Translations under genes and position numbers: made by a program | In this document: positions 23,366 to 38,950 of the stretch, one piece after another | Layout of the letters: the number at the start of each line of letters is the position of its first letter | Numbering within the stretch: the stretch's first letter is position 1 | Source: Adineta vaga | Lineage: Eukaryota; Animalia; Rotifera | Direction: 5' to 3' | Length of the DNA: 64,000 nucleotides | Assembly (NCBI GenBank): GCA_021613535.1 | Contig: CP075497.1 | Span: forward strand, 2,666,001 to 2,730,000 | Notes under the pieces: generated by a model | The model's database searches: none | What the model saw: the letters and a program-made list of their open reading frames with translations, nothing else | Told to the model about the DNA's origin: nothing

Positions 23366-26300
23366 TTAAAAAGAATCCTCACTATACATGGGACTTTTCA
23401 TAACACTTATGGGTATATCTTGTCGATTTCCCAATGATGTTGGTTCATAATGTCTTTGTTTCTGTTCTCGATGAGAATTAAACGGTAAAATATATCGAAA
23501 ACTACCCGATGGTGATACTGATCTTGATGTTCGTCGTGGTCGACGAAATTCTATAGTCGATGGTTGATCTTGTAAATCAATTACTGATATAGAACGTTTG
23601 GATAATGTAGCTGGAGGAATAGCTGCACCGTAAATACGTTCATCATTTGGCGCATGATGAATATCTTGAACAATTACAGATGAATTACGTTCGGCACTAA
23701 GAAGAAAAGAAGAGGATTAGACGTGATTTTTCTATAATTCATAAACATTTGAGTCTATTGAAGAAGATAATGAAGCAGGCAGTGCAGATTGTAATGAAGA
23801 TGCATTTAAATATCTCCATTCTTCTTGAGATAACCGTCGAACTTGTAATTCTGGTCGAGAAATGATTTGATGTTCATCTAAACTTGATATTGATGATGAT
23901 GATGGAAAATAATTCTCTTCACGACTCAGAATATCAATACAATGTCCGTATGATCGATAATTTGGATGATAGGATATCTCTATCGATCTGTATTAGATAT
24001 AAGCAGAAGCAGAAGCGTTAATTTTAAAAGAAAAGCGTTATTGATTAAAGAGATTCATCTTACCGTTGTCGACAACAAACGTAAAAAATTAAACATATGA
24101 TTAACCAAAGAGTTAATATACCAACAACAAGAATCAAAATAATCCACCAGTCAAGCTTAAGAAGAAAAATAGAAAGATTCTATCAATAAAAACAACTTGT
24201 TTTTTTTACCCCAAAAAATGGACCTGAACGACGATAAAATGGTACATTTACTGATTCGTCACTATTTATTAACACTTGATTATTTTTTGTTGGTATATAA
24301 CGTGTATAAACTAATGTTTGTAAACCCGTTTGATTAAATATTTGAGTATAGAGTCTTTCGGACGGTTGAGAATAATCACCAATATCACCTGAACGTAAAC
24401 CAATCATATAATCAACTTTTGTTTGTCCATTACTACATATTCCAATATATAACAATCAACAGAAGATTTCAATTGAAAGACTTACTTAGCTAAAGTTGAA
24501 CTAATCGATGGAATTAAAATATCATTTGCTGAGAAGAGATAACTATTAGCTAATGCCCAACTGTTTCTCAAAGCTTGATTAAGCATTGATAATGTTGTTG
24601 AACTAGTTAAATTGATTTTACTTCCATCAATATAAAGTGAAAATCGTTTATAAGGTATATTTGTATATAGATTTGATAGAATAATTGAATTTATTGATGG
24701 TTGTGTTACAGTTAATGAAGATAAATCTGAACCATTAAGATTAATTGTATAAGTAACACGTGTTAATGTTTGACTAAAATTGAAAAAAGAAAAATATTGA
24801 AAAGGAATAAGAAAACTTGAAAACAAAATCAATTTTACTTATTATTTGTCAAATAGGTTGAATCAAAATACATTTGCGATGAAACACTAATCATTAAATT
24901 ATCTAAATCATAGAATAAAATAGAAAAGTTTTGTATAAAAATTTGATTTACTATTCGATTGTCGCCATGCATTTTCTAATGTTGTTCGAATGATTTCATT
25001 TGACGATCGTGGTTCTATTAAATATATCCAATATGCTTGATACGGTATACAATGACTTGTCTAAAAATAAATAATAAATCAAAATAAAGAAATCTCCTTT
25101 ACTTACATTGACAAATTTTCCATAAAGTTGATCGAATGCCGAATTTGGCGGTGGAATTAAATTGTTTACATTAACATTCGATAAAAGACTTTGAACAATA
25201 TAATCAATTCGAAATGATTTCTTTCTAAAAAAGACAAAACTTATTCGCAATTTCAACTCATTTTTTTCTCGTACCCTCCCGAACAAATATATTGTACTTG
25301 ATTTTGTAATTGAATAATTAATGTTCCAGGTTGAATACCAACATTTTGATTCATCCATATTTGCGCTAGACCATCCGCAAGAGCAATCGGTTGGGCAACA
25401 AAAACATTTCGTTCCAGATAAATACTATAAACACCACCTGTTCCGTTATTCAAATTGGTCACTCCAGGATAGTACAATGAGAAATCACATCGAGTTAAGA
25501 TTTGTGTATCATTTTGAAACTAAAATAAAAACAGAAAAATCGATTGTTGAGAAGATTTAAGATTTTTTACCACAAGATAAAAACGCGTTTGATTAGCATT
25601 GAGCGTTTCTGCATAGACGATTTTCGCAGTTCCATATTCTAAAAACAAATTGATAGAAATGATTTCGAAATCAAAGTTTTCCTTACGTCGATTGTACGAA
25701 GTTAGATAATTTTCAATTTCTCGACGAGTGGCACTTGTTAATGGTAATGTAACATTCGCTATATATTGATGAGCATCACTACGTGCAACAGATAATTGTC
25801 CAGTTGGATATAAATCATATTTAATTGGTTGCATTGTTGAAAAAATAGACTAAAATAAAAAGTTTTAAAATTCGAAAAATTAAAATTATGAAAATTTACT
25901 TTTAATTGAACTTGAATTTGTTCTTGTGTAACAACTTGATTTGGTACAATCACATAATAAATTCGTGTTACTAGTGACATATCAAAACCAAATCGTGCTT
26001 CGACTAAGAACGATGAAACTGTACTACTAATTCCTGTTCTTTGTAATGCAGAAGTTAATAATGATCCAAAATTATCTTGTGTAAGATCAGCTAGAAAAGA
26101 ATTTCCTCGAAGATCAACAAATGATGCTGTATAAGTAAAAGGTATTTGTGTCACATAAGTATTCGGCGAATCACATAGACCATTCAATGATTGAATCAAA
26201 TTTGGATTGAAACATGCACTTGGAACTGTATAACCATCGGATGTGAGAACAATGTAAGTTATTGTTGTAAAGAATTGACTAAAAAACATAAATTGAAATA

Positions 26301-29300
26301 AAGAGAGAAGAGAGAGAAAAGATTTCTTTTACTTGGATGAATAAACAAAATATTGTTGTAATTGAAGAATATAAACATTCGAATTAGTTAAACCTTGTCG
26401 AATTGGATTTTGCCAATAATCAACTAAACTTGCTTGTGCTAAAGTTCGACTAATTTTTCCAGTAAATGTTATTTGTTGAACATCACGTTGTTTAACTATA
26501 TTATTTGGAACGATATTTGATATATATGTCAATGGTATTTGAGAATAATATGGACCCGCAAATTGTGATGGTGATAGAATTAATGCTGATAAATATCTTC
26601 CATCAAGTTCTTGATCATTATAGAATAGAAATGCATAAATTCTTTGAATTGTTGCTAATGAACTTGTATTTAAATATGTATCTTCCAATAAAACTTTCAC
26701 GTTATTACTTGTAATTGAACCTTTTCAAAGAAAATAAAACGACTGAAAAATTAGAAAAGATTAGATTTACTTTGTTGATTATATGTGGCTAGAATTAATC
26801 GTTGTAAATATTCTCGATCATTTATTGTTAAAGAATTGGAATAGAAATAAGAATATGCTTTGGATAAACGATAAATACGAGTTAAGATTCGTTGCATTTG
26901 AACAGAGATTAAAATTTGATATAATTGATTATTTAATTGTAAGGGACTGTCAAGCCAAGTTCCATTTTGATGTTGAATATAAATATTCGGTAAACGGTAG
27001 ATTTGTCTAAGAGAAGAATTGAATTTTAGAAATAAAAATCGAGATTCTTACCCGAGATTATCAACAGCTTCTTCAACACCAAAGATCGTCATATTCATCG
27101 TGTAGATTCCAGCTTGTTGTAAGGCATTATTTAATCGTCTTTGAAGTCTAAATAAGAGAATGAAATAAATTTCAAAGAAGATGGTTTTTTTTTATAAAAA
27201 TTTACATTTGTGGAATTGGACAGGATATATGAAAATCTTGAATACTATTTTGATATGGAATAATTTGTGTTTGATTTGAACATAGTAATTGATTATTTGC
27301 TTGAGTAATTGTTGAGAGTAAGATTGGATTTATTGTTAAATTAGTTGCTAAAGTTTGATTGTAAGTCATTCCATTGATCGTTATTAGAAAATATGCAGTA
27401 TTTGCCGGTTGACTAGAAATACAAAAAAAAAGCGTTTTGCTTTTTCCTCAAAATGAGAGGAAGAAGAAATTTCAAATTACCCTGTCGATGTTACACCAGC
27501 TTGAACACCTTTTAACATAACGACCACATTTGATTGTCCTATGAAAGAAACATTCATATCAATATTGATTTCTCGAAAAAATTTACCCGTAGCCGCTGAA
27601 ACTGCATTTGCAATTAAATTTGTCCATAATGATATTTCATTGAATGGAATACATAATTTCAATGGTAAGAGAATATTTAATGATATATAAGGTGTACATT
27701 GTTGATAAATTCGATAATTTACACTATTGAGAATATCATTTACTGACGCTAATGGTTCAATATTGGAACCCAAAACAGTTGATGAACCACTGGTAATTAT
27801 AAATCGTATTCGAGTCATTAAATCACCGGATATTGTCGCAAAATGTTCTACTCTTAATGGAATTGCAACATAACTTTCTATAATAACAAATCACATATTC
27901 AGAATGAAGTATTATCTTAAAAAATGTTTACGTGTTGAGAGAAGTGATATTCGATGTGCTGTATAGTATGCTGAGATTGTTTGCATTAATAATTGAACAT
28001 TTCCATCATTAATCGAAGGAAAATAACCACATATATCAATAATATACGGATCAACTGAACCAGTTGGATTACCAATAGCTCCACACATTGCGGCATATTG
28101 TGCAGCTGTTGGTTGTTGAATGACAACATTGGATGGAATAGTTGAAAAGATTGTATAATTGAAATTATAGATAATAACTTGAGTTCTAAATATAGAAAAA
28201 GAAAGAATGAAATGATTGAACGAGATTTTGTATACTGATTTTGATATCCATATTGTTGTGATGTTTGAAGAATTGCTCGAGTTTGATTATCTAATGGAAG
28301 ACGTGTGGCGGATATTTTACAAAGTGTCGAATACGTTTGTGAAGAAGAACCAGTGGTTAATTGTCGATTGGTTAATTGAGCAAAGGAATAAAAAATTGAT
28401 TGACCAACTAAATCAAAGAGAGAAACATTTTTCTAAAATTATTATCCAATTTTTCTTTCTCATACCAGATGAAGTGATTCCAAATTGTGTCAATATTGAT
28501 GAATCAATATCTATACGTGTATTATTATTTGATAATAACCATTGCCATCGATTTAATGTAGTACTGTATATTCCACTTGTCCAAAAATCTAAATAAAAAT
28601 CTTTGTTTGTTCTTTTAGATAAAAAAATGAATAAATAGGAAAACCTCGAGCTAAACCACGAGCAAATAATGCTGGAATTAATTGTTGTTGTATTTCATCT
28701 ATTGATTGAAACCAAACAAGTTGTGCAGATTTATCACTACAATCTTGAAGCGCATTTATTTGACTAACAAGTGATGACTGTTGATTGATTTGATAACAAT
28801 ATGGATAGAATGTTGTTGGACTAACCAATGTAAATGGAGTACTACAAACTAAGAAAAAATATATCTGTTAAGAAATTGATTAATTCTATGATTGAGTTAT
28901 TTACCGAGTATAACATTTAAACTATTCCAAACTTGATCAATACATTGTAAAATAAGTTCCCATGATGAACCTAAATATTCATTTTTGTCAACAATGTTTT
29001 ACTTATATATTTTTATTAATAGAATACCTCCAGGTCGATCAACTGGAATGACAATTTGTCCTGGATAGGTCGTATTTACTGGTGTAATTGGTGTTTGACA
29101 AAGATTTCCAGTAAATGTTGATGGACATAAACATGTACATCGACATCCTGTTGCATTTAGTATACGTGTACCATTATTTTGACATAATGACAACGAACAA
29201 ATATCAAATGGTGTTTCACAACGTGATCCTTTGTGTTTTGTGAAAAGAAAAATTCTTTTTATTTTGTACAGATGACAAACATTTACTTACCAGTAAAACC

Positions 29301-32300
29301 GCATGGACATTGACATCGTAATGCACTATCTTGAATCAAACATGTGCCTGCATTAAAACAACTATCACTCCTGCAAAGCGGAGTATTACAATTTGTACCT
29401 GAAAAAAAAATCTTTTCTTTTACAGAATCAATTCATAGATTAGTTCATTACCAGTAAATCCTGTTGCACATATACATGTATAGAATCCATTACCTAAACT
29501 TATACAACTGCCACCATTGAGACCTAGAAATAATTCATGTCACCAATACAATGAAATGACATTGAATTGACTTACATGGATTTGATGAACAAACATTATA
29601 TGGTACTTCACAAGATGCTCGTAGCATTGCCTTGCTAACGGCTGCTCGACTAGCTTCATCATTCTGATTCGTATAACTAGTTTCACATATACATACGAAT
29701 GAAGTCGAATTCCTGTTCTGACATATTCCTTGAACACATGGATTTGAGCCACAAGGTGAAAGAATCTCACAACTGAAAATAAAAGAACTTCTATATCACT
29801 AAAAGCTTTTGAATTTCTTTCGAAACATACTAAACACCATATCGTTCAGGTGGACATTGACAAATTTGAAGACCCGTTATTGGATTGATAATGCAAGTAG
29901 AATTGCCTTGACAAGGATTAACCGGACAGTAGATTATCTGTTGAGAACATGTTAAACCAGTATATCTTGGTGGACATATGCAAGTATAATTTGTTAATGA
30001 TAATGTTAAACAAGTTGCATTATTTAAACATGGATTCGAAGCACATGGTAATGAAGGTATATCACAATTAATTCCAGTTAATAATGGTGGACAAAAACAT
30101 TGATAACCACCGTTAGCAAGACTAGTACATGTACCTGTTCGACATGGATTTGATGAACAACCAAGGGATGTAATTTCACAACGAGAACCTACAAAAGTAA
30201 AAGTTTTGAAGAAAAGACTTCCTTTGTCATTTCAACCTTACCAGTATATAATGTTGGACAAATGCATTGCCAAAATGGATAAGTTCCCATCGATGCACAA
30301 GTACCACCGTTGATACAAGGCAATGCTCGACATGGTTCATAAATTTCACAATTTGTTCCAAAGAAACCCGAATTACAAAAACAAATATATGATCCATAAG
30401 AATTGATACATCGTCCTCCATTAGCACAGATTCCCGGAATCGTTGTACATTCATTGATATCTGCACATCTAAATAGTAAAATATCGCAATATTTTAATAA
30501 TTCAATTCTATTCATTATCATTATACATACACGCCCATCATATATTGAAATCCAACTGGACAATTACATGTATAAGAATAGTTTCCATTTGCAATACAAT
30601 TACCAGTTAAACAAGGATTTGTTTGACAAACATTTATTTGACATAATGCGCCTGTATATGCATAGGGACATTGGCATTGACATGTGATTGGTGATGTTAC
30701 CAATGATGTACCAATAGCACATGGATAATAGGAACAAGGATTTAGTTGTGTTTCACAATAACTACCATTATAACCTGCAGGACAAGCACAGGTAAACGTT
30801 AATGGACCAGTTCGTACACATGTTGCACCATTTCGACATGGACACGATTGACATGGATCGTATGTAGTTGCACATGTTGTACCATTAAAACCAGCAGCAC
30901 AAATACATGTATAATTAAAATAGATGGGTGATGAAACACATTGTGATAAGGGTCCACGACATGGATAACTTACACAAGGATCACATGCCAATTGACAATT
31001 AACACCATAGAATGGCCATGGACATTGACATATATAATAGTTTGATGTAGGTTCCAGACATGTACCACCATTAAGACATGGACGACTTAAACATACACTT
31101 ACACTAGTATTCGTTAAGGTACAATTTTGTCCAGTTGCACCAGGTGAACATATACAACGATAACCATACACTCCATCTAATATACATTGACCATAGATAC
31201 AAGGAGATGGTGAACATGGATTGACTGGTATTTCACAACGTGTACCAACATAACCTTGATAACAATCACATACATAACTATTGTTTGCATCGATTGCTCG
31301 ACATCGTCCATATAGACAAGGACATGATGTACAAGCACCATCCGATACACGTGTATCACAACGAAGTCCAGTATAACCAATTGGACATGTACAATTAGCT
31401 AAACCAGCTCCAAGATAATTACATGTACCTCGAACACAATAGGAACTATTTCCAATCGTTGTTAAACATAAATTGATTGGTGACTGACACAAATAACCTG
31501 TATAACCACTGGAACATAAACATGTACAATTCGTTGTACTAGATATAATAGGTATTCCATTACCACAGGTTAATGATGAACAATTACTAATTAACGTTTG
31601 ACAAATAATACCACTATACATTGATGAACAGAGACAAGTGAAAGATGTCGTTTGTGGAATACAAATACCTTGATTAAGACATGGATTCGATGAACACCAA
31701 TTAGTACTTGATTCACAACGAAGACCACCGTAACCTAATGAACATGAACATTGATAACCAAGACCATTTGATATGGTTGAACATGTACCATTGTTTAAAC
31801 ATGGACTAGATAAACATGGTTGATTAAGAGTTGTACAATTAGCATCAGAATAGCCTTGTTGACAAATACATTGATAACCATTCAATGTTTCATAACAAAG
31901 ACCATTATTTTTACATGGCATTTGTGTACAAAATAGATCTCTTAATTGACAAAATGAACCACGATAGGTTGCTAAGCATGAACAATTCAATAAACCTGGA
32001 CCAATATCATTACATATTCCACCATTTAAACATGGAGATGATTGACATGCTTGAACACGTACTGTACATGTTGTACCTTGAAATCCATATGGACATTGAC
32101 AAATATAAGAACTAATTTGATTAATACATGTTCCATTATTAAAACATGGATTTAATGTACATGAATTAATTGGTGATTCACATCGTTGACCAGTATAACC
32201 CGGAAAACAATAACATTGATAAGAATTTATCGATGGTATACATGTACCATTGATACATGGTGTAGTTGAACAAGTATTGATTGTATTCTGACAAACAGTA

Positions 32301-35300
32301 CCTGTATAACCAGATTTACATGAACAAACACCGCCGGATGAACTTGTTCGAATACATGTACCATTATTTAAACAAGAAATAGATGCACACGGATCAAGCA
32401 TTGATTCACAGTTAGTACCAGAATAACCTTTTAATATGAATTTGAAAAAAATCAAAATCAAATCAATTATCTTGAATTTCTACTTACCAGTTGGACAAAG
32501 ACATCGATAACTATTCAATATTGGTTGTAAACAAATACCAGCATTTTGGCATGGTGATGATGAACATTCATTGATATCAATTTCACAACGATTACCTGTT
32601 AAACCAGCTAGACATGTACATCGATAACCTGTACTTGTTATGCTACATGTACCATTATTAAGACAAGGACCTGAACTACATTGATAACCGCCTTGTTGAC
32701 ATTGTGTACCTGAATATCCAGTTAGACAGGTACAAGTAAATGCATTGATCATATCTGTACATGTACCATTATTTAAACAAGGTAAACTTCCACATTCATT
32801 GATATCTGTTTGACAATTGAAACCTGTATAACCAGGAGTACAAAGACAATAGTAATAACCCGCTGTAACTTCTCGACATGTACCAAATCGACATGGATTT
32901 GCTGTACATGCATTAATAGTTAATTCACATCGAGGACCTGTATAACCATATGGACAAGAACATTGAAAACCAGTACTTGCTACAATAGTACATGTACCAT
33001 TATATCTAATTGAGAAAAACAACAATGAAGAAATGGATAAGATAGTCTTCGGGGTTTTGTTTTGTTTTCTGAAAGTTAACTTACAAACAAGGACTACTTA
33101 AACATGGTTGAGTGATACTTTGTTCACAATTAATTCCTTGAAAACCGGTTACACATCGACATTGATAACCATTGGTTAACAATGTACATGTACCATTATT
33201 TAAACATGGAGCACTTAGACAGAAATTGACATCATTCTATAGGACAGAAATAAAAATGACATGACGAAAAACATTCTCAGTACATACTTCACATAGAACA
33301 CCTTCACCTCCTGAATAACAGCTACAGATGAATCCATTGACTCGATCAATACATTGACCACGTCGACATGGTTGTGTTGCACAATCATCAATATCAATTT
33401 CACACATATCACCTGTAAAACCAGGTAAACATTGACATGTATAACCATGAGGTTTAACATCATAATTAACTAGACAAGTCGCATTATTTGCACATGTTTT
33501 TGAATTTAAACATGGATTTATTTGTTCGGTACATGTTATTCCAGAAAACCATGCAGGACACAAACAAACAAAACGATCAAGTCCATCAATACATGTTGCA
33601 TTCGATTGACAAGGATTTGAAGCACATTTATTAATTTGTACTTCACAACGAACACCTGTATAAGATGATGATGGACATATACAATCATAACCATTCAGTC
33701 GATTTTGACAAAGACCATTTATACATGGTGAACTCAAACAATAATCAACTAATAAATGACAATTCGATCCTGTATAACCAGGTAAACATTGACATGTATA
33801 ATTCCATACTTTATCGATGCATGTTCCATTATTTAAACATGGATTTAATAAACATTCATTGGATTTATTTTCACATTGTAGACCAAGATAATCATCAAGA
33901 CAGATACATCGATAACCATTTAAAAGTGATATACATAAACCATTATTTAAACATGGATTACTTAAACAATAATTGATTACTGTTGAACATCTTGTTCCCT
34001 AGAAAATACATTTAAAAATTATATATACGATTCATTACTATATTTATACTTACATTGTATCCTTCTAGACAATCACATTTGTATCCATTGATTAATGTTC
34101 GACATATGCCGCCATTTAAACAAGGATTCGATTGACAATAATCAATTTGAATTTCACAATAGAAACCCGTAAAACCTATGAAAAAAAGTCTTTTTCCTCA
34201 AACAAGACAGTTATGTTGATTTTTGTGATACTACCTGGATTACAAATACAAGAGAAATTATTGAAAAGATCAATACATCGTCCAGAATTAAGACATGGAT
34301 TGACTGGTTCACATTCATTTCGTTCTGTTTCACATTGTGTACCTAAACGATGAAGAAAAAAAGAATGAAATTTTTGATTGAATAAAAAAAACACATTTTA
34401 TATACCGATAAGACCACTTGGACATAGGCAAACATATTGATTAATCAATGATTTACATGTACCATTATTTTGACAAGGTTGTGATTGACATTGATCAATG
34501 ATTGTTTCACAAAATAAACCTGTAATTCCATTTGGACAAGAACATTGTGGACCAAGATCAGTATTTGAACATATACCTCCGTTTTGACACTGAAAAAAAA
34601 ACAAAGAAGTCATATCATCTATTACTTCATAATCAAACAATCAATTTCTTACTGGTTGTGATTGACAATAATCTACAAGCAGTTCACAATTATCTCCCTG
34701 ATATCCCTGTGCACATAAACACATCAATGCCGTTCCATTTCGTATACATTTACCGCCATTTAAACATTCAAAACCTGTACATTGATCTTGCAAACGTAGA
34801 CAATTGGTTCCACTGTAAACAGGTGGGCAAAGACATTGATAACCATTAATTAAATCCACACATGTTCCACCATTCAAACACTAAAGATTGAAAAACTTTG
34901 TTATGTTTTTTCTTTAATTTTAATAAACAAATCTTACTGGTTGTGATAAACATTCATTGATATTAACTTCACAATAACGACCTGTATAACCTGATTTACA
35001 TGAACATGTAAATGATCCGACTGATGTTTGTAAACATTGTTGTACTCCATCGATTGAACATGGATTTGTTAAACATAAATTTATTATTTGTGTACATTGT
35101 GAACCTGTATAACCTGGCGCACAACAACACGTATAATTCGTTCCTAAACGCATACATGTACTATTGGGACCACATGGTGATGGTAAACATGAATCAATTG
35201 ATGCATCACAATTCGGACCTGAATAACCATAATCACACAAACATCCATAGGCTGAACCAGTTGTTGAATTGGAAATGCATGTTCCATGAATACATGGATT

Positions 35301-38300
35301 ACTTGCACATGAACTGAGTGGTTGTTCACAACGTAAACCTGTATAAAGTGGTGGACAAACACAAACATAACCTATACCATTGGTTGTCAATGAATCACGA
35401 CATGTACCACCATTTAAACATGGAAAACTCAGACATTGTGTAATGATGGTTTCACATCTCATACCTGTATAAACTGTTGGACAGGAACATAGGAAACTAT
35501 TTACTTGATCAATACATGTTCCATTATTAAGACAAGGACCTGATTGACAATCATCAATATTTATTTCACAATAAACACCTGTAAAACCGACTTGACATCG
35601 ACATGTCAGATTTCCACCATAGTTATAAATACAAATACCATTATTTCGACATGGATTAACTGCACATAAATCAATCGGTGTATAACAATTCGCACCAGTT
35701 AACCATGATGGACAAATACATCTATATGAACCATTGTTATTGATACATGTTGCATTTGGATGACAAATCGATGGAGTAAGACATTCATTTATATCTACAT
35801 CACAATATGTTCCTGTCCAACCAGAAGGACAGATACATGCCAAAGAAACAACATTATTGACACATGTACCTTAAGAAAAGAAAAAAAAATAGAACGTATT
35901 AATAAAATAAGAATCGATATTTACCATTATTTCGACAAGGTACATTTGAACATCCATTAAGTGTATATTCACAATTAGTACCAGTATAACCAGTTAAGCA
36001 AATACAGCGATATTGATTGATACCATCAATACATACACCTGCATTTAAACATGGATTTGATAAACATTCATTAATACCATCTTTACATTGTAAACCAGTC
36101 CAGCCAGGTTCACATGCACAAGTCCACATATTAGCAGATACAACACACGTACCAAATGAACATGGACCACTATCGCACGGACTTAGAACAGTTTCACAAC
36201 GCGTTCCTAAATAAACCACAAATGAATAGGTCACAAAAAAAACACAGATTGATCGTTCATTCAAATTACCAGTATGACCTGGTTGACATGTACATCCATA
36301 ACCATAATTGGTACCATTTGCTGTCAGTTGGCATGATATAGAACCAGATGCCACACATGGATTACTTGAACATGGATCAATAAGAATACTACAATCACTT
36401 CCTTGATATCTTCCATCACATTGACATATATATCCATTAACTGTATTAATGCATGTACCACCGTTTCGACAGGGTGTTGCTACTGATGAACAAGACGTTG
36501 CCGTTTGTGCACAAGTTAAACCTTTACATAAATATCCTATTTATTTCGTTTCTGACTCATTTCATTTTCTTACCTGAAAAACCAGCTCGACAAGAGCATG
36601 TATATGTTAGATTATTATTATTCGTGCAAATTAATGTATTATTTGCTACACATGGTTGAGAAAGACATGGATTCAATGCAATTGCACATGTTAGACCTGT
36701 ATAAGTCGTTTGACAAATACATGTGAAGCCTATTGCTGTGGCAATACATAAGCCATTATTCAAACATGGTTGTGATCGACAATAATCATTTTGAGTATCA
36801 CATAATTGGCCCGTAAAACCTAAACAATAACAATAATAAAATTACGCAAATCAATTTCACATATATACTTGTAGGACATTGACAATAGAATGAATAATTT
36901 GCAAGTAGAAAGCATTGACCACCATTTCGACAAGGTGAATAATCACAAGGATTTAAGGTTGTTTCACAATATAATCCTGTGAAATACGTTGAACATTGAC
37001 ATTGAAATCCCGTACTTGTTAATACACAAAAACCATTATTTCGACATGGATTACTTGAACATGCACTAATTGGTGTTTCACATAGACGACCTTCATTCAA
37101 ATTACATATTATATCGAATCTTTCATTTCTAACTCTAATTCTACTTACCCGTATAAGTTGATGGACAACAGCATGAACCGTTAAAACAAGAGCCACCATT
37201 GACACAACCAGATGCAACGGGACATTCGGGATCAATGTACGACGAAAGATTTTTCAATAGACACGAATTCGCTGGATACCAAGTTGATAAACATGTTCGT
37301 ACACCATTTGTATCACATGTAAAATGACCTTCACTACATGAATTTGGTGCATAACATTGAACAGTACAATTTGGACCATAGAATCCCACAGGACATTGTT
37401 GTCTTTGTTGACAATACAATCCTGAATATCTAAATTTTCATATCAACAAACATTATTATTTTTCTCACGAATTAAATCGATAATTGATTAACATACCCAG
37501 CTGCACAAGTACATACATAATAAGAGGTACGTAAAAATGGATCATATGCAGCATTACATACACCACCATTGAAACAAGTGATATTGACCGTACATGTTGA
37601 TAAATATTGGCAATTTAAACCGGTAAAACCTGCGATATTTTTTAAATAGAAAGAAGAAAAACAAGCAAATATAAAACTCACCAAGTGAACAACAACATGT
37701 TGCTTGATTTGTACTATTAAATACTCGACAAAAACCACCATTATTACATGTTACTCCTTTAGACAAAATAAAAAGACAATATTAATAAAGCATTTTTTTG
37801 TTTTTAACAAATTTCCTTTACCAGATGATGTACAAGCCGGTTGAATATATGAGGAATCTCGTATTGCACATTCTGTTCCAAGCCAACCTTGTGAGCAAAT
37901 TTTTGCACCTGTAGTTGCATTACACGTGTATGAACTTGTACAATCATCATTTGGAATACAACGAACAGAACATAGAGTTCCGTAATATGTTGGTTGACAA
38001 TAACTTTTCAATCCAATGCTCAAACTAAATATCAATATGAAATTTTATGTTTATAATATTGAAATTTCGTTTACTTGTTCAAATCTGTTCCATTTCGTGA
38101 TGCTTCATAAAGTATTTGAGTAAGAAATGTGCCCGTTGTTGATGATGGCGATGATGAATCCGTTCGAAATACGGTATAAAAACGACTTAATAATGTATTT
38201 TGATTGATCAAAGAAAGATTTCCAATTCGTATATAATCATAAAAGATAAAGATTTTGATAATCATTGTATTCTAATCAATCACAAACAAATGAAAGTTAT

Positions 38301-38950
38301 TTCTTTTGATGAAATTCAAATTCTCACTTACATCAGATAATGATATTAATGGAAATTGAAGAGGTAAAACTGGTGCTACATCAGATAACGAATGAAAATT
38401 TACAGAACCGGTATTATTTATTATTGTTCGAAATGCTCTCGATCCTAATGGACAAAACGTCCAATTGGTTAGTAATCCACTAAAACAAAAACAAAGTACA
38501 GATAAAATCTTATAAATTAAAATATACCTGTAGACAAAATCTAAGCAGACAATTGTATATAGATTACATGTTGACATTGCACAATTCCCTAAGAAACCTG
38601 TTCCATCACAACATTGACCAGCAACAGTTATACGAGATAGAATATTAAATTGTGTTAAATCAACGAGTAGTGCAGAAGGTGTTTCTTGACAATTGATCTA
38701 TGTATATGAGAAAGAGAGAAAGAAATGCTGTTTCTTTTATTCAAAATGTGCACATTTAGTTCTCATCAATGAACTAGTGATGCGTATATTGTGAATAACT
38801 ATTCCCAAAACTTTCATGTCTTATGTCTTCTACTCAAATTTACAAATGTATGTGAGTGAAAGATTTATGTTCATTTACCTGTTGATTATTGAATAATAAT
38901 AAAAATAATAAGAACAATATGTTTGTAGGAGAGAAATATGTGTTGTACAT
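23366..38950 (-). CDS. Giant type I membrane Notch-ligand-like protein: signal, C2/MNNL, DSL, EGFs, second DSL, about 60 or more EGF repeats, C-type lectin, SEA-like repeats, TM, cytoplasmic tail
   Basis: Signal [20 protein letters not shown]; MNNL-like GQCCDG..C....C.LYTIVCL..CPLG..PLQFPL; [39 protein letters not shown]; second [30 protein letters not shown]; many C-x4-C-LNGG-x-C EGF and DINEC cbEGF repeats; CTLD (CYQ..ALQDC..AQLV..FWTSG..WQW); [27 protein letters not shown]; ends SEDSF*. Confidence 0.85.

Follow-up and report, generated by a model that had tools for sequence, protein, structure and literature searches.

Results

A single transcribed gene on the minus strand

The window analysed here is a stretch of 64,000 nucleotides from the bdelloid rotifer Adineta vaga (assembly GCA_021613535.1, contig CP075497.1, positions 2,666,001 to 2,730,000 of the forward strand), AT-rich with a G+C content of about 30%, and the positions given below count from its first letter. 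At 23366-38950 it holds one real, transcribed gene that encodes a type I membrane protein of about 4,155 residues. We are highly confident that this is one gene with the layout of a head, a rod, a lectin-like region, a stalk, a transmembrane segment and a tail, in which the head resembles that of the Delta/Serrate (DSL) ligands of Notch and the rod is made of EGF repeats (Table 1).

Minus-strand open frames are densely chained across the interval, with gaps of about 50 nucleotides between them, and they join into a single open chain of 49 exons running from the ATG at 38950 to the stop at 23366-23368 (12,468 nucleotides, 4,155 residues, about 450 kDa). These are the strand, start and stop proposed by an earlier reading of the letters (the sequence-only reading), and its coordinates were right. 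The gene model was made with a splice-aware dynamic program, trained on the 5′ introns and on introns backed by RNA, and was corrected wherever the RNA disagreed with it. The chain runs for about 4,155 codons without an in-frame stop, its median intron is 55.5 nucleotides long, the largest intron 5′ of the transmembrane exon has 181 nucleotides, and the first four introns of the 5′ end, read by eye, are clean GT..AG introns. A joined script version of the model (4,176 residues) was used for counts, patterns and local BLAST only; for the other searches the exons were taken one at a time, and a spliced ortholog from Adineta steineri (P0036) stood in for the joined sequence.

Contigs from four small public RNA runs of one study were placed on 24050-30049. 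All 15 joints in these contigs read CT..AC on the plus strand and hence GT..AG on the minus strand, and three loose contig ends match the next exon exactly and add the introns 23697-24063, 24774-24838 and 28186-28235, giving a total of 18 introns confirmed by RNA. The joints and the exact loose-end matches therefore establish that the runs contain spliced RNA. One contig joins the last EGF exon (29028-29172) to 28905-28970, 28645-28848 and 28489-28588, and the EGF rod and the lectin-like region are therefore on one transcript; overlapping spliced contigs tile the stalk, the transmembrane exon and the last exon. We take 30050-38950 to be continuous because the frame is unbroken, the introns are short (181 nucleotides or less) and there is a paralog with a like order of parts.

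Three further observations concern the transcripts and the exon boundaries. At 26210 and 26650, each of the four RNA runs has contigs of roughly doubled depth that give way to 180-255 letters unlike the window, and the 30-letter starts of these off-window letters match nowhere in it; they could represent a divergent allele, another transcript or a chimeric contig. One contig of run X4 matches only 23 bases (30018-30040) with both flanks unlike the window, and is probably another EGF-repeat transcript. The stretch of 63 nucleotides at 36207-36269 is in frame, is bounded by good GT..AG ends and contains no stop; as its retention would add 21 residues that break the EGF pattern, an intron is the probable reading.

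Orthologs, a paralog and the DSL loci of the genome

When one stalk exon was compared with 1.84 billion representative proteins, 32 matches were obtained, and the credible ones are all collinear gene fragments with 34-78% identity. They are partial, unnamed proteins of the bdelloids Didymodactylos carnosus, Rotaria sp. and A. steineri. P0036 (A. steineri, 1,079 residues) corresponds to residues 2680-3756 of the model at 83% identity without a gap, and spans EGF, lectin-like region and stalk in one protein model. P0003, P0034, P0035 and P0033 match the stalk through to the transmembrane segment, collinearly and at 57-79% identity, and together with P0036 they support the exon model of the 3′ third. 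All public bdelloid models of the gene are partial, and their ends are set by contig ends and not by gene ends. P0016, P0024, P0025 and P0032 were rejected as relatives, since their matches are compositional (TIR/LRR, HYR and similar, in many short stretches).

In the 100.8-Mb, six-contig assembly there is a paralog on another chromosome (contig C3), in which the parts follow in the same order across some 15 kb, with 30-71% identity, the highest value being that of the first DSL domain. Judged by sequence, the gene and the C3 paralog are two old copies that have kept the whole layout. By six-frame domain scans the genome has only five DSL loci, which are the gene, the paralog and three canonical-looking loci, whose MNNL exons score 76.8, 34.3 and 32.1 bits. 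We found no paper on rotifer DSL proteins.

The head: a probable MNNL-like region and two DSL domains

The tip begins with a signal peptide, after which come the MNNL-like region, DSL and EGF. The top Pfam family of exon 2 is MNNL (PF07657; 15.9 bits, E 0.009), scored per exon for a domain that is split over exons 2-4, and exon 2 of the paralog reaches 23.3 bits, above the cut-off of 22.5 (20.5 bits in the six-frame genome scan). In an hhalign comparison with the MNNL exons of the three canonical rotifer loci, the first strand and the 'G.CC.G' motif are aligned (pairwise E 6e-4, probability 28%). We suggest that the N-terminal region is probably MNNL-like.

Both DSL domains exceed the Pfam cut-off for DSL (PF01414, 24.2 bits). 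The four DSL domains of the gene and its paralog (the latter at L003:2713-2856 and L003:3280-3423) were aligned with the three canonical ones. All four share an insertion of 3-4 residues with a seventh cysteine, which is absent from the three canonical loci, and the Phe before Cys3 that is kept in the three canonical rotifer DSLs is replaced in all four domains of the giant pair. The receptor-facing part has therefore diverged, and the DSL domains of the window are not six-cysteine domains with the canonical receptor-facing loop. The EGF that directly follows each of the four carries C-C-C where EGFs have C-x-C. This triplet occurs only three times in the 4,176-residue script model, and the EGFs that bear it after the two DSL domains of the window lie at about 37690 and about 37170. 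An extra disulfide between the seventh DSL cysteine and the C-C-C of the next EGF is a reasonable inference from this pattern.

The EGF rod

Exon-wise Pfam scans of the exons from 37756 to 29028 gave EGF-type matches only (E down to 7.9e-56) and no other family. In the rod, 387 cysteines and 52 matches to a strict six-cysteine pattern were counted. An EGF hidden Markov model built from those matches recovers 64 units, of which two are fragments of the DSL domains. We therefore count about 62 EGFs, in line with the "60 or more" that had been estimated from exon length. The calcium-binding start motif is present in 7 of them, the O-glucose consensus in 30 and the O-fucose consensus in 43. VWC, the mark of Jagged/Serrate, was found neither in the exon scans nor in P0036. 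EGF arrays rise by about 2.5-3 nm per EGF and the rod, if extended, could span about 150-190 nm.

The lectin-like region

The lectin-like domain proper lies at 28236-28848. Exon-wise Pfam scans of 28867-24186 gave no family. A profile of the region run against all PDB sequences matched only convulxin beta, a snake C-type lectin-like protein, at E 0.01 and in two collinear stretches that correspond to the start and the end of the domain. The nearest named Atlas clusters carry Lectin_C in 29 of 30 cases, the thirtieth being CLEC14 (top score 0.94). The window, the ortholog and the paralog have in common the long-form cysteine pair, the helix-1 cysteine, the 'FWTSGI' and 'WQW' motifs and the C-terminal 'C-K'. 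Four of the six framework cysteines are present and the inner pair is missing, and neither an EPN/QPD nor a WND motif follows WQW in the window, ortholog or paralog copies. An hhalign comparison with one canonical rotifer C-type lectin-like domain (CTLD) and with a profile of its close relatives was not significant, with a short aligned stretch in the right register. We consider it likely that the region is a divergent CTLD that does not bind sugar.

We note that the predicted intron 28408-28465 falls within this region, whereas the paralog (L004:2339-2626) is one uninterrupted open frame here; the two old copies therefore differ by the gain or loss of an intron.

The stalk

No Pfam family was found in the stalk, whether on the exons or on the orthologs P0003, P0034 and P0036, and P0005 is likewise without Lectin_C or SEA. 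A PDB sequence profile search with the stalk alignment had no match, and neither self-BLAST nor hhalign of the best unit against the stalk alignment detected internal sequence repeats. From the lectin-like region to the membrane there are 19 N-glycosylation sequons.

The structure of the stalk was modelled with AlphaFold on a 31-row alignment whose first row was P0036:678-1079 (402 residues). The model has a mean predicted local distance difference test score (pLDDT) of 68.8, and for most of residues 80-350 the block means lie at about 70-90. In it, three or more ferredoxin-like beta-alpha-beta-beta(-alpha) units follow one another, each about 100 residues long. By length the stalk may hold nine or ten such units, of which three are seen in the model. 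The model was compared with 48,161 chains using VIA-align, and each of the matches given here covers about 81-94 residues of the best-modelled unit (residues 177-274). SEA and SEA-like membrane-adjacent domains rank near the top: Gpr126 SEA (Z 8.4), PCDH15 MAD12 (Z 7.8, 7.6 and 7.4), CELSR1 (Z 7.5), MUC16 SEA (Z 7.3, 6.9 and 6.5), the IA-2 ectodomain (Z 7.0), CDH23 MAD28 (Z 6.3) and TMPRSS6 (Z 6.3). Foldseek against the PDB gave no match at E ≤0.001 and returned non-significant tandem ferredoxin-like proteins of the ACT/RRM type; an Atlas fold search with the stalk model gave tandem ferredoxin-like (ACT) proteins with template modelling scores below 0.5, and a language-model look-up gave no score of 0.9 or above. 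The beta2-beta3 turn has no G-S-V-V-V autoproteolysis motif, which only some SEA domains possess, the sole 'GSLL' of the stalk sitting in a helix, and the ectodomain has no furin site (R-x-K/R-R). We suggest that the stalk units resemble SEA-type juxtamembrane modules, a resemblance that the model supports at the level of the fold only. Since the Z scores are middling and the fold is common, we claim likeness and neither membership of the SEA family nor descent from it.

The membrane anchor and the tail

The single transmembrane segment corresponds to residues 4032-4066 of the 4,176-residue script model and is followed by a tail of 110 residues, so the anchor and tail of the sequence-only reading are both borne out. 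The tail motif 'SFRYILPF' is common to the window and the Didymodactylos ortholog. The tails of three orthologous models (P0003, P0034 and P0035) contain sequence that is homologous to the candidate cassette exon at 23843-23987 and shares a conserved stretch with it. Together with an exon of eight nucleotides (23747-23754) the cassette exon keeps the frame. The homology and the kept frame make two tail isoforms likely, with predicted tails of 110 and 161 residues in proteins of 4,155 and 4,206 residues.

Table 1. Features of the gene (window positions) and related loci elsewhere in the assembly
Feature	Position	Strand	Evidence or remark
Exon 1, start codon and 24-residue hydrophobic signal peptide	38879..38950	-	In-frame stop 11 codons upstream of the ATG; GTAAAT donor after codon 24
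MNNL/C2-like N-terminal region (probable), exons 2-4, about residues 25-195	38075..38697	-	Pfam on exon 2, paralog exon 2, hhalign
DSL domain 1, exon 5 (37822-38018)	37865..37999	-	Pfam DSL 47.8 bits, E 1.8e-12; genome scan 47.2 bits
Two EGF repeats between the DSL domains	37497..37756	-	First has C-C-C replacing C-x-C
DSL domain 2, exon 8 (37149-37429)	37276..37395	-	Pfam DSL 28.1 bits; genome scan 29.5 bits
EGF rod, about 60 further repeats (about 62 with the two between the DSL domains)	29028..37250	-	Pfam EGF families, cysteine and hidden Markov model counts
Short linker piece and probable divergent C-type lectin-like domain, exons 27-30	28236..28970	-	RNA joints, PDB profile, Atlas neighbours
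Stalk, exons 31-46, about 1,060 residues, cysteine-poor	24210..28185	-	Most introns RNA-backed; collinear with bdelloid proteins
Best-modelled SEA-like unit (beta-alpha-beta-beta-alpha), exons 38-39	25796..26139	-	Model residues 177-274, block pLDDT about 71-88
Transmembrane exon	24064..24155	-	Sole 19-residue window with Kyte-Doolittle >1.9 in the protein; RNA joins to 24210 and 23696
Candidate cassette exon of the cytoplasmic tail	23843..23987	-	Skipped in mapped RNA contigs (24064 joined to 23696)
Last exon, cytoplasmic tail and stop (23366-23368)	23366..23696	-	Loose ends of contigs X1-X3 at 24064 match 23667-23696 exactly
Three canonical MNNL-DSL loci	C1:7989141-7989836; C1:2604729-2605486; C4:11844774-11845545		Two are a paralog pair
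Notch-type locus, three LNR repeats, one in the genome	C2:6926290-6926672		Domain scan

Discussion

The architecture described here is new within the DSL family. On balance we favour the view that the protein belongs to the Delta/Serrate ligand family as a derived form whose architecture is known to date from bdelloid rotifers alone, and that its ligand-type head binds an EGF-repeat partner. That it is ligand-derived, as the sequence-only reading had put it, holds in view of the order of signal peptide, MNNL-like region, DSL and EGF and the presence of only five DSL loci in the genome. From tip to membrane the proposed layout is signal peptide, MNNL/C2-like region, DSL, two EGFs, second DSL, about 60 EGFs, probable CTLD, SEA-like stalk, transmembrane segment and tail. 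The head would thus be carried at the end of the rod and stalk, over a span of the order of 150-200 nm, and would bind an EGF-repeat partner on another surface, the most plausible candidate being the product of the single Notch-type locus of the genome, with the SEA-like stalk and the transmembrane anchor carrying the load. In Notch-ligand complexes MNNL and DSL contact EGF12 and EGF11 of Notch (PMC7922208), and the order of the head is that of the receptor-binding part of working Delta/Serrate/Jagged ligands (PMC2770060, PMC7922208). A Notch ligand of very long reach, which was the first suggestion of the sequence-only reading, is possible on the sequence; that the head truly binds Notch seems to us rather doubtful.

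The likeness to Delta, Serrate and Jagged includes the signal peptide, the probable MNNL-like N-terminus, a DSL domain with the YYG/FYG motif, the EGFs, the single transmembrane segment and the short tail. The rotifer protein differs in having two DSL domains two EGFs apart, each with the seventh-cysteine insertion and followed by a C-C-C EGF; in having about 62 EGFs where those ligands have about 8-16; in lacking the VWC of Jagged/Serrate; and in placing a probable lectin-like domain and a 1,060-residue SEA-like stalk between the rod and the membrane. More than one DSL per predicted protein was described in cnidarians by Gazave et al. 2009, one Nematostella model having MNNL and three DSLs, but those genes either are arrays of DSL domains alone or are MNNL-DSL models that lack a long EGF rod, a lectin domain, a stalk and a transmembrane segment, and the authors doubted the assemblies behind them (PMC2770060), whereas RNA and a paralog support the rotifer gene. 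Work on lophotrochozoan Notch ligands likewise allows a gene to have more than one DSL (PMC8166818).

With the Notch receptor the protein shares a long EGF run rich in O-fucose (43) and O-glucose (30) consensus sites, then a SEA-like module near the membrane; it differs in its ligand-type head, in having the calcium-binding start motif in 7 EGFs only and in the absence of an LNR, ankyrin or PEST part. EGF repeats stand beside a C-type lectin-like domain in a number of secreted or membrane proteins, namely Drosophila Uninflatable, which has been reported to modulate Notch, the G3 domain of lecticans, the selectins and the thrombomodulin group. To our knowledge none of them has MNNL or DSL, and their lectin domains pass the family model, which the rotifer region does not. 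The stalk is best compared with the SEA and SEA-like juxtamembrane domains (MUC16, MUC1, Gpr126/ADGRG6, PCDH15 MAD12, CDH23 MAD28, IA-2, TMPRSS6 and the Notch HD). Its best structural matches have Z from 8.4 to 6.3, and in MUC16 SEA domains also occur in tandem. The stalk itself has no Pfam SEA match, G-S-V-V-V motif, furin site or mucin-type Ser/Thr/Pro repeats. The SEA domain of Gpr126 was itself recognised by structure only (PMC6954182).

Several observations weigh against the reading that we favour. The RNA check is confined to 24050-30049 and the 3′ loose-end joints. The MNNL score of the window itself is below the cut-off, and exons 3 and 4 have no Pfam match in the exon-wise scan. The insertion with the seventh cysteine and the loss of the Phe mean that Notch binding may be lost or changed. 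Lectin_C (PF00059, cut-off 22.6 bits) has no match on the window exons or on spliced P0036 at E up to 5, and the AlphaFold model of the lectin-like region, made from an alignment of three species or copies, has a mean pLDDT of 32.3 and is unusable. SEA (PF01390, cut-off 26.4 bits) has no match on the window exons, P0003, P0034 or P0036, and a six-frame genome scan with the SEA model has none at the locus. The stalk model covers 402 of about 1,060 residues and comes from the ortholog and not from the window protein, and Z scores of 7-8 are in the range reached by common arrangements of the ferredoxin-like fold.

Set against these observations, the domain assignments of the sequence-only reading stand in part. 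Of the C2/MNNL and DSL domains that it placed at the N-terminus, DSL is secure and has a companion that it did not list; MNNL is the top family for exon 2 at a score short of the cut-off that the paralog exon exceeds. Its CTLD (about 28320-28850) is in the right place, with an identity that is weakly founded on convulxin beta, the Atlas neighbours and the shared landmarks and that the Lectin_C model does not recover. The stalk is indeed longer than 1,000 residues, and its repeats appear not in the sequence but only as fold units within the 402 modelled residues; "SEA-like" is sustained by the fold and not by the SEA family model.

The most serious rival is that the protein arose from a ligand but has ceased to signal through Notch. 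It would then serve at the surface as a long molecule for adhesion, spacing or coating, much as giant EGF proteins and SEA-bearing membrane mucins are used, and the DSL head would be kept as a structural or homophilic binding module. What makes this rival serious is the diverged DSL loop together with the three canonical ligand loci, which are available for ordinary Notch signalling. All four DSL domains of the paralog pair differ from the canonical loop, the additional cysteine of the EGF that follows (C-C-C) would fit a rigid staple between DSL and EGF better than a receptor face, the ectodomain far exceeds the normal gap between cells, and the tail is short and poorly conserved. However, working ligands have exactly this MNNL-DSL-EGF order at their tip, and both paralogs keep it, with 71% identity in the first DSL, and no adhesion partner is known; we rate this rival as credible without preferring it. 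We consider it improbable that the protein is a long-range Notch ligand doubling as a mechanosensor, in which pulling on the head, carried on a rod of about 150-200 nm, would unfold the SEA-like units, as in mucins and the Notch HD domain. On this reading shedding would follow, and a signal would pass by way of the alternatively spliced tail to the cell that bears the ligand. The SEA domains of mucin-1, Notch2 and Gpr126 have been described as modules that hold together until force separates them, and those of mucins, Notch and Gpr126 as force-sensitive juxtamembrane modules (PMC6954182).

The glycan-sensing receptor that the sequence-only reading also entertained would have the CTLD as its working, sugar-binding part and the EGF rod as a spacer. 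The region is probably lectin-like, and ortholog and paralog both conserve it, but the EPN/QPD and WND motifs are absent, only four of six framework cysteines remain, Lectin_C of Pfam has no match, and the domain sits near the membrane under about 62 EGFs and not at the tip; glycan sensing is therefore not supported, and we think it very unlikely. Of course, the whole could be an artefact in which at least two adjacent genes, a DSL-EGF gene and a lectin-stalk-transmembrane gene, have been joined, given that the RNA mapping covers only 24050-30049 and the 3′ loose-end joints and that the public bdelloid models are all partial. However, those models end at contig ends and not at gene ends, no stop interrupts the roughly 4,155 codons, no intron upstream of the transmembrane exon exceeds 181 nucleotides, one RNA contig links the last EGF exon with the lectin-like exons, P0036 unites EGF, lectin-like region and stalk in one model, and the paralog has the same order of parts. 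We regard such a fusion as the least probable of the explanations considered here.

DSL ligands are among the most uniform of animal signalling proteins, with a short head, fewer than 20 EGFs and a transmembrane segment. The gene shows that a DSL head can be mounted on a very different body: the protein is about four times as long as Jagged, has a second DSL domain and possibly an extra DSL-EGF disulfide, and bears a juxtamembrane stalk like those of force-bearing proteins, which adds a family of SEA-like units, orphan in sequence, that every family model misses. Bdelloids are hard to manipulate, which sets a practical limit to experiments. Should the head have kept its binding to Notch, the protein would offer a natural case in which to study what ligand length and stalk mechanics do in a pathway based on pulling; if it has lost that binding, a ligand module would have been re-used for adhesion or for a surface coat.

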